A stretch of DNA of 64,000 nucleotides from Paraphysomonas bandaiensis (taxonomy: Eukaryota > Protista > Chrysophyceae), in assembly GCA_965644295.1 (NCBI GenBank), contig CBFFRP010000426.1:186001-250000 (forward strand). Direction: 5' to 3'. Position numbers and translations under genes: made by a program. The notes below the pieces were generated by a model. It did not search any database, was not told the DNA's origin, and worked only from the letters and a program-made list of their open reading frames with translations. This document shows, piece after piece, positions 53,891 through 59,599 of the stretch (its first letter is position 1; every line of letters begins with the position of its first letter).

Positions 53891-54403
53891 AAGGATCTAT
53901 GAAGAGGGGAAATGAAAGGATTAGATAGGGTTATTTCAACATGATTGATATGTAAATGAGGAATTGAATGTGGTTGAATGAACAGGTCTGGTTGGTGGTA
54001 TATATATATGGATGGGTGGGTATATAGAGACGATTGTACTGCTATCTCTATATGAGTGTATATATATAGCAGTACATGCAATACATATATAGGTACTCCT
54101 AGCTTTGTACTGCTGCACTTTGTGGAGTACATAAACAGAGAGTGTCAATCCATGTAGTGTACACTGTATATGTACTGCTGTACATCCAATTGATGTCCAC
54201 TGTCCACAGGTACATACAGAAGTACAATAAATATAGCAGTGTGTGTACTGCTGTACCACATCCATGTACCATATACAACATCAGCACATCTCCACTCTAT
54301 GTACATACACGGCCAGCATCCCCCTTTGCTTCTAATCATCACATCCACAAGCATCAATTCATTCAATATGACTCATATATACACATCTCTTGGTTTTCAT
54401 TAG

Positions 54404-57400
54404 ATGATTACGTGTCGTAGGTCTCGTCGACATGGTTCAGTGCTCCTGTGGAGACTCCACATGCCCTCCTATCGATACAATGGGACAAAGACAAGTGCTT
54501 CATCTTATACCCCTAATAAACCATTATCAAACCATTTAATACAAGGAATGGGAACTCATAAGATGAAATCTGTATTAGAAGGCTATAGAAATGATCCAAA
54601 TGAGTTAAATCGTTTTATCGAACATGTTATTCGTTCCTCTAATCTGACATCTGTGTCGAGTTTATTGTATTCGAGTAGTAAACTTGGAATTAATTTATCT
54701 CCCGAACACGTACACAATATTGCCACATCTTTTGGTGATAGCAAGAAAATTATGGGTACCATGGATCTTGATAAGTCTTTTTGTGGCTTACGAATCATGC
54801 AGAGCGAAAATACAGATGCCAGAATATTTCTGCGTGCTCTGACTAATATGGCTGTCAAGAGTGGCACTTTATCATCAAGAAACGTTGGTTCGATTGTTTT
54901 TTCACTGAAAAATATGAACAGTGGATATTCAGATGTGCGAAACTTGTTATCTGTTCTTATTACTAAAGTAGCACAATGTGAGGACAGTTTCACTGGCCAG
55001 GAGATTGGCAATGCATTGTATGGCATGCAAGCGATGTCCAGTGATCATACAGTTGTTCGTCGACTGCTAATGACGATATGTGATAAGATTGTGTCTTCTC
55101 CACACTCCATGAGTGGCTCAGAGATCGGTAGTGCACTGTATGGAATGCAGGGGCTGTCGTCGGACAAATTAGAGGTTCGGTCTGTGCTTGCTGCATTGGG
55201 TAGAAAGACAAAGCTATGTCAGGGAGTATTTAGCTCTCAGAACGTTGCTAATAGCCTTTATGGCTTGCAGGGAATGTCAACCACCCATCAGGAAGTGCGA
55301 GACTTACTATCTGCTCTCATTCCTAAAATATCAACATGTCGGGAGATGTTCACCCCTCAGGAGATGAGTATGTGTTTATATGGTTTACAACGAACATCAT
55401 CCGAATGTTGGGAAGCACGGGAGGTGTTAGTTCATCTCGCAAGCAATTTTCGTCGGTCACAGGCACGTTTTAATGCCCAGGGGTGTGGCAACAGTCTTTA
55501 CGGTATGAACGGTATGTCTTCTGCACACAAGGAGGTTAGAAGTATGCTGAAAGTAATCAGTAGCAAGATATCCGATTGCAATGACGAGTTTCGCGGGCAG
55601 GATATGGGAAATGCGCTGTACGGCCTTCGGAATATGCGTAATACTGATGAAGGGGTCGAAGAGTTGTTGCATGCCTTGAAGGACAAAATAGAAGTAAGCA
55701 GCCGTACTTTAAGTGCGCAAGAAATTTCCAATGCACTCTACGGTTTACAAGGAATGAGTAGTGAGAGCCCTATTGTGGTAAGCCTTCTGTCTGCGTTATC
55801 AGTAAAGTTTGAGAAGTGTCCCGATCGTCTTAGTGCTCAAGAAATTTCGAATGCTTTGTATGGTCTTCAAAACATGACTCCAGCGTCTCCGGAAGCAAGG
55901 AATATTCTTAGTATATTAACTTGCAAAGTTCAACAGTGTTCTGAGATGTTTTCCACTCAGTGTATGGGCACATCTCTATATGGCCTGCAGGGAATGTCTA
56001 GTGAGGTTCCTGAGGTGCAAAACTTAATATGTGAGTTAACGGCGAAAATTGCTGCAAGTAATGATAAGTTCACCGCCCAGACTGTGGGTATGACTATGTA
56101 CGCGCTTAAAAGCATGTCAAGTGAGACCGGAGTTGTGCTGCAGCTTGTCCGCGAACTTACTCGTAAAATACGGTTATGTGAAGAGGATTTTGATTCTCAG
56201 GCACTGGCGAATGCTGTGTTAGGTCTGCGAGGGCTGGCGTCGACAAGTGAAGAAGTCCAGGAGCTAATTCTTGTCCTCGTTGATAAAGTAAACGCCAGTG
56301 ATGCTCAGTTAACTCCCCAGGGAGTGGGAAGTGTTTTGCACGGTCTGCAAAAACTATCCAGTGATAATTCAGCCGTCAAATCTCTACTTCTTGCCCTTCT
56401 AAAAAAAGTAAAGGCTTCAAACGACCCTCTCGATCCTTACTCGATTTCATGCGGTATGTATGGTATGAGTAATCTCTCCAGCGATGACGCTGAAGTTCGT
56501 GCACTTCTTCATGTTCTCGTGCCCAAAGTTGATGAATGTAAAGATGTGTTTAATTCTCAAGAGATTGCTAATGCCCTATATGGCCTCCAGAAAATGAGTA
56601 GCACTCGCTTAGAAGTTCGAAGAATGATTTCAGCATTGCGTAAAAAACTTGAGACATGCCCTTATCCGTTCACTAACCAGGAATTAGCATGTGCCTTTTG
56701 CAGTTTGCAACGCATGTCTAGTGCACAGAAAGAAGTCCGATCATTGCTAACTGCCCTTACGAGGAAACTTAGTGACCGAAAATGCGAGCTCGATAGCCTG
56801 TCGCTAAGTTTGATGGTGTTTTCTTTGCAAGGAATGAACAGCAGTGTTGTAGAAGTGCAGAATCTCCTTTCCCATATCACTAGTGCACTGAGGGAATGTA
56901 CTTCAAGATTTCATTCAAATCAGCTGAGCAGTATACTCTTTGGTATTCAAGGATTCACCAGTGATGATGCTGGAGTGCTTGACTTTCTCTCTGCTGTAGA
57001 CGAAAAAATGTTGCATTGCGAGGATAGATATACCGCTTTTGATATTCATAGATCGTTTTATGGCCTACAGGGTATGTCTAGTGATTATCCTGAAGTGACA
57101 GATATCCTCGTCACCCTGTACAGGCATCTCCGCAATTGCGAAGAGAATTTTAATCTCTTGAATTTGACTCAGTGTTTGTACGGCTTGCATAACATGTCGT
57201 GTAGACATGGTATAGTTCAAGATGTTCTGCTGACAACGTTTCATAAGTGCGGTGGTATACATATCAATAAGTTGCTAGAGCGCCCCAATGATGTATCTGA
57301 TAGCGATTGGTATAGATGCACGTCTGATTTGTGGAGGGCGTTGGTTATATTTGAGAATAGTGTAGACTGTATTCCAAAGTTGTTAACAAACTACATAGAC

Positions 57401-57814
57401 AACTTGAAGGGTCCACTAGTAGCAGTTATGCGTAGTCAGAAGCATTTGCACGTCAACTCTGGATCAAGAGTCGAAGAACTTTTTGCCAGTGGTATAGAAG
57501 CATACATAGCTTGCAAGAAAAATGCTAGCATTGAAAGAAATGTGGTTTTTAATGGCTTTGAATGTGATATTGTAGTGTATATTGGAAGCAGTGATTCAAA
57601 TCAGTATGAGAGGATGATCAACATCGAAATTGATGGCCCATCTCATAAGTATCCAAGGCGAGTCCGGTTTTCGAATGCTCGAGATAAGGTTCTCAGAGAA
57701 GTACATGGAATAGAAGTTTATCGTATCGATTTGTCTGCATATGGAGGCGGGTATTTGTCCCGGGCAGATGTCAATAGAATAGTTGCAATAAAGCTTTGTG
57801 ATATTTTTTCATAA
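54404..57814 (+). CDS. Helical-repeat protein (20 x 40-aa repeats) with C-terminal RAP domain; putative organellar RNA-binding/processing factor
   Basis: 1136 aa, intronless; Arg-rich, acid-free N-terminus; repeat consensus FsaQeigNALYGLQgMSSd..eVr.LL.aL..Ki..c; C-terminal FECD..NIEIDGPSH..RDKVL...GIEVYRI. Confidence 0.9.
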   Translation: MITCRRSRRHGSVLLWRLHMPSYRYNGTKTSASSYTPNKPLSNHLIQGMGTHKMKSVLEGYRNDPNELNRFIEHVIRSSNLTSVSSLLYSSSKLGINLSPEHVHNIATSFGDSKKIMGTMDLDKSFCGLRIMQSENTDARIFLRALTNMAVKSGTLSSRNVGSIVFSLKNMNSGYSDVRNLLSVLITKVAQCEDSFTGQEIGNALYGMQAMSSDHTVVRRLLMTICDKIVSSPHSMSGSEIGSALYGMQGLSSDKLEVRSVLAALGRKTKLCQGVFSSQNVANSLYGLQGMSTTHQEVRDLLSALIPKISTCREMFTPQEMSMCLYGLQRTSSECWEAREVLVHLASNFRRSQARFNAQGCGNSLYGMNGMSSAHKEVRSMLKVISSKISDCNDEFRGQDMGNALYGLRNMRNTDEGVEELLHALKDKIEVSSRTLSAQEISNALYGLQGMSSESPIVVSLLSALSVKFEKCPDRLSAQEISNALYGLQNMTPASPEARNILSILTCKVQQCSEMFSTQCMGTSLYGLQGMSSEVPEVQNLICELTAKIAASNDKFTAQTVGMTMYALKSMSSETGVVLQLVRELTRKIRLCEEDFDSQALANAVLGLRGLASTSEEVQELILVLVDKVNASDAQLTPQGVGSVLHGLQKLSSDNSAVKSLLLALLKKVKASNDPLDPYSISCGMYGMSNLSSDDAEVRALLHVLVPKVDECKDVFNSQEIANALYGLQKMSSTRLEVRRMISALRKKLETCPYPFTNQELACAFCSLQRMSSAQKEVRSLLTALTRKLSDRKCELDSLSLSLMVFSLQGMNSSVVEVQNLLSHITSALRECTSRFHSNQLSSILFGIQGFTSDDAGVLDFLSAVDEKMLHCEDRYTAFDIHRSFYGLQGMSSDYPEVTDILVTLYRHLRNCEENFNLLNLTQCLYGLHNMSCRHGIVQDVLLTTFHKCGGIHINKLLERPNDVSDSDWYRCTSDLWRALVIFENSVDCIPKLLTNYIDNLKGPLVAVMRSQKHLHVNSGSRVEELFASGIEAYIACKKNASIERNVVFNGFECDIVVYIGSSDSNQYERMINIEIDGPSHKYPRRVRFSNARDKVLREVHGIEVYRIDLSAYGGGYLSRADVNRIVAIKLCDIFS

Positions 57815-58987: not shown

Positions 58988-59599
58988 ATGAAGCGTACAT
59001 TCTCATCTGTTGAGGAGTCAGACAATGAATTTCATATGGAATTTAATGAAAAACTGAAAATACTGAATGTTCAAGACATATTGCTCAATGAGAACGAAAC
59101 GATAGGATCTGACAGAGAATTGACATCAAATGAAGTAGAAGAAAGAAAATCTAAATTGAAAATATCTGAGATACCAAAACCCGTAACTGTTGCTGATTCT
59201 CTGCGGTCCAAATTTGAGATAGAACTTGCCAAATGCAAGCATTTGGATTGGACAGCGTGCTGTCAAGCCGTTATGATGGGAAGCCTCACTACACTACAAT
59301 GGCTGCGGTCCCTGTGTCCTCCAGCTCCCTGGAATGCGAGGGTGATGTCTGCGGCTGCCTCGCAAGGGCGACTAGATATCATCAAGTGGGCACGAGCTCA
59401 GAGTCCCCCTTGTCCTTGGGATCGGCGTGTGTGTGGCTATGCCTCCGCTGGGGGGCACTCTTCACTATTGAGGTGGGCCATTGATAATGGGTGTACCTAT
59501 TGCGAGAAAGAGTGCGACATTGCTGCTAAAACAGGTGAGTATTTTAATTGTATGATCGAACAAATGGAATCCGATTGCGGATTCTTTGACGAATCGTGA
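58988..59599 (+). CDS. Protein with short CPWD-type ankyrin-like repeats
   Basis: PPAPWNARVMSAAASQGRLDIIKWAR, PPCPWDRRVCGYASAGGHSSLLRWAIDNGC. Confidence 0.8.
   Translation: MKRTFSSVEESDNEFHMEFNEKLKILNVQDILLNENETIGSDRELTSNEVEERKSKLKISEIPKPVTVADSLRSKFEIELAKCKHLDWTACCQAVMMGSLTTLQWLRSLCPPAPWNARVMSAAASQGRLDIIKWARAQSPPCPWDRRVCGYASAGGHSSLLRWAIDNGCTYCEKECDIAAKTGEYFNCMIEQMESDCGFFDES

Follow-up and report, generated by a model that had tools for sequence, protein, structure and literature searches.

A Paraphysomonas bandaiensis protein with strictly periodic 40-residue helical repeats represents an unannotated, chrysophyte-expanded branch of the OPR/HPR/FASTK-RESC6 superfamily

A 64,000-nucleotide stretch of the genome of the chrysophyte Paraphysomonas bandaiensis (GenBank assembly GCA_965644295.1, contig CBFFRP010000426.1, positions 186,001 to 250,000 of the forward strand), hereafter the window, carries an intron-free gene for a protein made of a presequence-like N-terminus, a long array of 40-residue helical repeats and a C-terminal nuclease-like domain. 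The protein family to which it belongs is an unannotated, lineage-expanded branch inside the OPR/HPR/FASTK-RESC6 superfamily and not a wholly new class. The protein is probably a mitochondrial OPR-like solenoid, one of dozens of paralogues, that is predicted to bind specific single-stranded RNA and to cut a transcript or protect its end. That the ligand is RNA rather than DNA or protein, that it is recognized by its sequence, that the end domain is catalytic and that the protein acts in the mitochondrion are conclusions we infer from the lines of evidence given below. In window coordinates, the gene and its parts are as follows.

54404 to 57814, plus strand: complete intron-free open reading frame (ORF) of 1136 amino acids plus stop, uninterrupted.
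54404 to 54523, plus strand: presequence-like N-terminal stretch, residues 1-40, by composition only.
54752 to 54868, plus strand: degenerate 39-residue repeat unit, residues 117-155, matched by the family hidden Markov model (HMM) with an independent E-value (i-E) of 3.2e-5, at a spacing of 39.
54869 to 57268, plus strand: array of 20 units of exactly 40 residues, residues 156-955, delimited by 40-residue cutting, the family HMM and an AlphaFold2 model of units 2-11.
57269 to 57454, plus strand: helical linker from the array to the end domain, residues 956-1017, modelled from residue 996 onward only.
57455 to 57811, plus strand: C-terminal DUF559/Vsr/RAP-like PD-(D/E)XK domain, residues 1018-1136, by profile, model and motif residues.

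The ATG of the gene is immediately preceded by an in-frame TAG. Cutting the translation every 40 residues from residue 156 (nucleotide 54869) gives 20 units that stay in register to residue 955 (nucleotide 57268). These units share a scaffold that comprises F/L1 (18 of the 20 units), Q4 (13), L10 (13), Y11 (14), G12 (16) and L13 (15), and in the second half M16 (14), S17 (14), S18 (16), V23 (18), L27 (16), L30 (15) and K33 (17). A unit HMM was built from 313 in-phase repeats of 30 paralogues from the same genome, with the query left out. It matches the query 20 times, with i-E values from 9e-9 to 6e-22 and a spacing of exactly 40 residues throughout, and once more weakly (3e-5) at residue 117, 39 residues upstream of the array. 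Both the phasing, including the single 39-residue unit upstream, and the conserved scaffold had been described by a model that read the DNA without database searches (the sequence-only reading), and both are borne out here. Between units, mean identity is 31% for the protein and 44.5% for the DNA (maximum 58%), and the same codon is used at only 37% of identical residues. The copies are therefore old, since the units have diverged in DNA and in codon use, and a recent DNA expansion of the array was rejected, in agreement with the codon divergence reported in that reading. As expected for old repeats, Tandem Repeats Finder reported none on the array DNA.

AlphaFold2, given units 2-11 and an alignment of 40 homologous ten-unit segments, predicts a confident solenoid (predicted local distance difference test, pLDDT, 95.9; predicted TM-score, pTM, 0.90). 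In each modelled unit, a nine-residue loop, G-L-Q-x-M-S-S-x-x, at positions 12-20 joins a short helix A (positions 3-11) to a long helix B (positions 21-36). We compared this model with about 48,000 PDB representatives using VIA-align. The best match is a chain of the Chlamydomonas mitoribosome (7pkt_Q, Z 14.2 over 361 residues), and high scores were also obtained for the Polytomella mitoribosome (8a22_Xd, Z 13.8), the trypanosome RAP-domain protein RESC6 (8fn4_6, Z 13.4), ASA2 (6rd4_2, Z 12.1), RESC4 (8fn6_4, Z 10.6), RESC8 (8fnc_8, Z 9.1), two Toxoplasma mitoribosome chains (Z 9.9 and 9.1) and 7pkq_P (Z 9.8). ARM, HEAT and importin-type solenoids score Z 7.6 or less. The Chlamydomonas mitoribosome chains are ASA2-like/OPR proteins, and the inner groove of several of them holds the single-stranded end of an rRNA (PMC8660880). 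A Foldseek search with the same model placed RESC6 first (E 3.4e-7; query TM-score, TMq, 0.53) and, at TMq of roughly 0.3 and above, also lists designer PPR-RNA complexes and mitoribosome chains from Chlamydomonas, Polytomella and Toxoplasma; leucine-rich-repeat rows are many, with TM-scores all below 0.2. The 50 best matches of the array include no TALE or mTERF structure. By shape, the nearest ESM Atlas clusters are either RAP/RESC6/FAST_1 clusters or bacterial clusters with DUF1601, some of which have RAP as well, and the named clusters nearest by language-model features (0.93-0.95) all carry RAP, RESC6, FAST_1 or DUF559. The fold, the language-model neighbours and the combination of repeats with a PD-(D/E)XK domain thus sustain the earlier view of the protein as a strict 40-residue relative of organellar RNA-binding solenoids.

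The further claim of a distinct repeat class is not borne out. The OPR repeat is itself given as 38-40 residues long (PMC8635915, PMC6212722), bacterial relatives have periods of both 38 and 40 residues, and members of the family reach DUF1601. The family alignment, run against bacterial and archaeal genomes, matched 27 loci (best tblastn E 7e-88); some of the matches in metagenome-assembled genomes (MAGs) may be misbinned eukaryotic contigs. The hosts include a Legionella gresilensis isolate, a Legionella MAG, Legionellales and Rickettsiales MAGs and Cupriavidus gilardii. The Legionella gresilensis locus (L040:183-1751) lies on a 380-kb contig and adjoins a D-lactate dehydrogenase-like gene, and a protein from a Pseudomonadota MAG (L032:2833-7092) ends with an OTU deubiquitinase domain and is effector-like. 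Further bacterial loci with the repeat are L035:2857-4986, L033, L042, L047 and L039. The bacterial relatives share the AQxIGNALYGLQ helix A. Their period is 40 residues in the Legionella gresilensis, other Legionellales and Rickettsiales records and 38 residues in Cupriavidus gilardii and several MAGs, and the difference between 38 and 40 sits in the loops. This continuum of 38 and 40 residues at high sequence similarity is the main reason why the 40-residue repeat is not treated as a separate class. OPR proteins have also been reported in Coxiella (PMC8635915), and the occurrence of the chrysophyte repeat in Legionella-like bacteria hints that it may have passed between protists and the bacteria that live inside them.

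The link to curated models is visible at the level of the family. A chrysophyte homologue (P0039) exceeds the DUF1601 cut-off with 31.3 bits, and DUF1601 matches at E up to 1 occur in 20 of 41 ten-unit family segments, the best with 1.2e-7. The query itself passes no Pfam threshold, and its whole-protein matches are sub-threshold and mostly spurious. It has no Pfam PPR match at E up to 1 and no Pfam RAP (PF08373), FAST_1 or FAST_2 match. The outcome named as refuting in the sequence-only reading, a strong full-length match to an existing model of the same period, was not found, with PPR, RAP, FAST_1 and DUF1601 all sub-threshold on the query. Genome-wide Pfam searches with RAP, FAST_1 and DUF1601 gave no match in this genome. 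Against PDB sequences, phmmer with the query returned nothing meaningful; the family profile returned designed helical repeats and marginal matches to RESC4, RESC8, RESC6 and mL104 (E 0.001 to 0.24), the E of 0.001 being that of RESC4. A full-text literature search found no paper mentioning DUF1601, and none of the papers listed by a search on chrysophytes links them with RAP, OPR or HPR proteins.

A search of 1.84 billion cluster representatives returned 1909 clusters with E of 1e-3 or less, of which 424 have E of 1e-30 or less. The organism-named homologues all come from Chrysophyceae or Synurales (Chromulina, Epipyxis, Spumella, Mallomonas, Ochromonas danica, Ochromonadaceae CCMP2298) and are all unnamed proteins, several from transcriptomes. 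Of about 1500 spacings between neighbouring units in 120 homologues, 75% measure exactly 40 residues; the spacings listed range from 38 to 61 residues, with a few at 12, and 37 is not among them. In the 62.6-Mb genome of Paraphysomonas bandaiensis, matches fall in at least about 36 separate long open frames. Thirty of these paralogues were retrieved and confirmed; several contain 14-29 units, always spaced by 40 residues. At least 13 paralogues carry the end domain. The family thus spans the chrysophytes and has no fewer than 30 paralogues in this genome, which answers the question of paralogue number and taxonomic range raised with the sequence-only reading, and the 40-residue period belongs to the family as a whole and not to the query gene alone. 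Some paralogues adjoin each other, as a divergent pair at C90:70215-77499 and a tandem pair at C424:117589-120891, which suggests that local duplication is one source of the family.

Positions that might read a ligand were sought by comparing repeats with orthologues. The sequence-only reading had listed the residue pairs at positions 5 and 8 of the 20 units, which we reproduced exactly, and had proposed these two positions as code residues. Both vary across the query units (entropy 2.8 bits at position 5 and 2.5 bits at position 8), yet positions 20, 21, 31, 32, 35, 36, 38 and 40 vary more. For an orthologue group of 26 proteins with a mean identity of 74%, we compared at each position the variation between repeats with that within orthologous columns, over ten repeats. 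Positions 2, 3, 5, 6, 14, 15, 37 and 39 differ among repeats and are nearly fixed among orthologues, with 2.65 versus 0.25 bits at position 2 and 1.72 versus 0.12 bits at position 5. Helix-B positions 20, 21, 25, 28, 32, 35 and 36 drift freely among repeats and among orthologues alike. This pattern is what one would expect if helix A and the loops beside it formed a constrained surface specific to each repeat, and helix B a free outer face. Drawn as a helical wheel, helix A would place positions 5 and 8 most nearly opposite its hydrophobic positions 6 and 10. Position 5 is a fair candidate for a specificity site, and position 2, which is S, T, N, D, R or H in the query, is a candidate at least as good. 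Position 8 fits that role less well: it is Asn in 10 of the 10 repeats of the orthologue group and in 45% of the repeats of the paralogues of this genome, and it looks like a conserved contact that has been diversified in the query paralogue. A code of one repeat per nucleotide, read by position 2 (S/T/N/D), position 5 and the Asn or its variants at position 8, seems to us rather doubtful; with an active Vsr-like endonuclease it would make these proteins natural programmable RNA cutters.

The C-terminal domain is common to at least 57 of the 120 listed homologues. We aligned 58 family end domains, including that of the query. Pfam DUF559 (PF04480) matches 29 of them (best 3e-10) and the restriction endonuclease-like family REase MTES_1575 matches 24, while Pfam RAP, FAST_1 and FAST_2 match none of the 58. 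The query end domain alone matches MTES_1575 only, at 19.7 bits, below the cut-off. The profile of the aligned domains reaches PDB entry 3hrl ("endonuclease-like protein") with E 0.025. The model of the end domain (pLDDT 89) has an alpha-beta-beta-beta-alpha-beta core, and its Foldseek matches include restriction and homing endonucleases, among them BstEII and I-Bth0305I, and Toxoplasma mitoribosomal proteins, as well as the FAST1-FAST2-RAP module of human FASTKD4 (9gek, TMq 0.56, E 0.075). The query keeps every majority motif residue, namely E1024, D1055, E1075-x-D1077-G1078, H1081 and R1093-D1094. Its end domain is thus, by profile, motif and model, of DUF559/Vsr-like PD-(D/E)XK fold, and may be active. 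Motif residues are replaced in the end domains of P0028, P0050, P0030, P0022 and P0032, which are conserved homologues of 1200-1500 residues; in query numbering, D1055 is replaced by G, A or V, D1077 by Q, E or V, and H1081 by D, S, C or Y. Judging from these replacements, this conserved orthologue group probably keeps the fold of the end domain without catalysis.

This group shows that the fold could persist without catalysis, and it bears on the idea that the protein is a structural or scaffold subunit that does not read RNA by sequence. Such a subunit would belong to the mitoribosome or another mitochondrial complex, or would serve as a protein-binding platform, and its nuclease-like domain would only dock. 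Many of the top fold matches of the array are indeed constitutive mitoribosomal proteins, and ASA2, a component of the Polytomella ATP synthase, is among the best. The query, however, retains all motif residues of the end domain, and at least 30 diversified paralogues, with helix-A residues that are specific to each repeat yet fixed among orthologues, fit many ligands better than a place in one complex. We consider a purely structural role unlikely.

The affinities of the end domain also raise the possibility of a DNA-targeting nuclease, in which the array would recognize DNA, mitochondrial or other, in the manner of TALE or mTERF proteins and the Vsr/DUF559-like domain would nick or cut it. 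The domain resembles bacterial DUF559/MTES_1575 more than it does Pfam RAP, and restriction and homing endonucleases are among its fold matches. The array points elsewhere: TALE and mTERF structures lie outside its best 50 matches whereas RNA-bound OPR, PPR and RESC proteins lie inside, its nearest language-model neighbours are RAP, RESC6 and FAST_1 clusters, and the RAP proteins studied so far act on RNA (PMC5449608). A DNA target is accordingly held to be very unlikely.

Several observations bear on where the protein acts. The first 30 residues of the query contain 7 Arg/Lys, no Asp/Glu and no hydrophobic signal-peptide core. Across the family, 22 of 31 N-termini have at least 4 Arg/Lys and at most 1 Asp/Glu in the first 30 residues, as compared with about 3 Arg/Lys and about 3 Asp/Glu in windows taken from protein bodies. 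Many members start with ML(R/S), and Arg/Ser-rich, acid-free starts recur among the paralogues. Complex plastid targeting would require a hydrophobic signal-peptide core, and none of the 31 family N-termini has one. The only high-scoring bacterial-type 16S in the assembly is the mitochondrial one (934 bits). Five further 16S-family matches exceed the cut-off with 202-565 bits, two of them of nuclear 18S length; weaker matches lie on contigs C68, C188, C196 and C551. No plastid-type 16S was seen in the whole assembly, in a search with a stricter first look by which absence is not proven. Plastid targeting was rejected on the N-termini, which are not signal-peptide-like, and on the lack of a plastid-type 16S. 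The mitochondrion is therefore the likely place of action, given the presequence-like composition and the elimination of the plastid, and the earlier attribution of the Arg-rich N-terminus to mitochondrial import is supported by the composition of the query and of most paralogues. In favour of a cytosolic or nuclear repeat protein whose basic N-terminus is incidental are the 9 of 31 family N-termini that fall outside the simple composition rule. Against it are the recurrent ML(R/S)-type, Arg/Ser-rich and acid-free starts of the paralogues and the close structural and feature neighbours, which are all organellar families; we give this explanation very little credence.

The mitochondrial genome was found on a 61,647-bp contig (C669, comprising L058-L064) that carries cox1, unfragmented small-subunit (SSU) and large-subunit (LSU) rRNAs and a group II intron, with a group II intron domain at L062:7178-7278. 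Its 23 tRNAs include 19 in two clusters. Since most tRNAs lie in clusters, they would be unable to punctuate every gene, and site-specific processing factors would therefore be useful in this mitochondrion. A link between the family and rRNA fragmentation was rejected, the mitochondrial SSU and LSU rRNAs being intact.

We propose that the protein is a nucleus-encoded, mitochondrion-targeted alpha-solenoid in which about 21 helix-pair repeats would form a superhelix. The inner face of the superhelix, made of the short helices A and their flanking loops, would hold a specific stretch of single-stranded mitochondrial RNA. The Vsr/RAP-like PD-(D/E)XK end domain may then cut or process the bound transcript; alternatively, the bound protein may act as a barrier that defines and stabilizes an RNA end. 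Each of the at least 30 paralogues would probably serve a different transcript site of the 61.6-kb mitochondrial genome.

Some points weigh against this proposal. Long helical repeats can reach Z of about 13-14 by shape alone, so the fold evidence has to be read beside the other lines. The libraries used hold no curated OPR or HPR profile, and the query stays below the cut-offs of the models that come closest (DUF1601, 11 bits versus 25; MTES_1575, 19.7 versus 38.2). All Foldseek matches of the end domain are weak, with E of 0.01 or more and none below 0.001, and the DUF559/Vsr relatives in bacteria have DNA as their substrate. The placement of helix A along the concave face is a prediction. 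Finally, the mitochondrial rRNAs are unfragmented, so the role that many OPR/HPR proteins have in green algae and apicomplexans is not directly applicable.

In the window, the stretch at 53980-54330, just upstream of the gene, is rich in short TATA/TACA/GTAC-type words and yields several spurious ORFs on both strands. The downstream neighbour, at 58988-59599 on the plus strand, is an ORF of 203 residues whose ankyrin repeats score 26.7 bits with Pfam Ank_4, above the cut-off.

The rules by which OPR and HPR proteins recognize RNA are still unknown, and their motifs are so degenerate that repeats are hard to delimit (PMC12691811). The chrysophyte branch is the opposite case, with perfect register, very confident models, many paralogues, conserved orthologue sets and one small organelle genome as the likely target space. 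If a code of one repeat per nucleotide does operate here, this could be the system in which the OPR/HPR recognition code gets solved. A survey with the RAP model found few RAP proteins in heterokonts (PMC8190603). The present family indicates that heterokonts can hold a sizeable family that curated models miss, and such a survey would overlook it. The comparison of orthologues with repeats, the bacterial relatives with 38- and 40-residue periods and the organelle-genome context are new in this analysis.

Among known systems, PPR proteins are likewise solenoids of two-helix repeats, and designer PPR-RNA complexes are among the Foldseek matches of the array. The few polar positions that are specific to each repeat, close to the start of helix A and at the end of the unit, recall PPR positions 5 and 35. 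The PPR period is 35 residues as against 40 here, Pfam PPR gives no match, and the query family has no known code. The DUF1601 or Legionella-type bacterial proteins share the AQxIGNALYGLQ helix and, in some cases, the 40-residue period. Their arrays are shorter, their units are much more alike, some have 38 residues and some carry other end domains, such as the OTU domain of L032; DUF1601 itself gives the query only 11 bits. The HPR/FASTK-RAP proteins and the trypanosome RESC6, RESC4 and RESC8 have the fold class of the array, and the nearest clusters carry RAP, RESC6 and FAST_1. In FASTK-RAP proteins, too, the repeats are followed by a RAP-like nuclease fold (FASTKD4, 9gek, TMq 0.56), a likeness at the fold level only, and a mitochondrial RNA role would be common to all of them by analogy. 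The HPR period is 37 residues whereas that of the query is 40, and Pfam FAST_1 and RAP find nothing in the query genome.

The repeats of OPR proteins differ in that the query units lack PPPEW and LWAL/LWALAR and have no Pro-rich or Trp motif, carrying LYGLQ-x-MSS instead, and in that OPR repeats are degenerate whereas the query family is strictly of 40 residues with almost no indels. The end domain of the query family matches DUF559/MTES_1575 and not Pfam RAP, and the host is a chrysophyte in whose assembly no plastid-type 16S was seen. Both families consist of tandem helix pairs, with a period inside the stated 38-40 residues (PMC8635915), and share the helix-A signature Q-x-[IV]-x-N-x-L-aromatic-small-L, as in the OPR unit of PMC12691811. 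The OPR proteins, which in green algae comprise OPR-RAP members as well as mL113 and mL115-118, the ASA2-like/OPR proteins of the mitoribosome, also supply the best fold matches of the query array. In both, a C-terminal PD-(D/E)XK module is joined to the repeats, and both are expanded families of nuclear genes that serve, or in the chrysophyte case would serve, an organelle.

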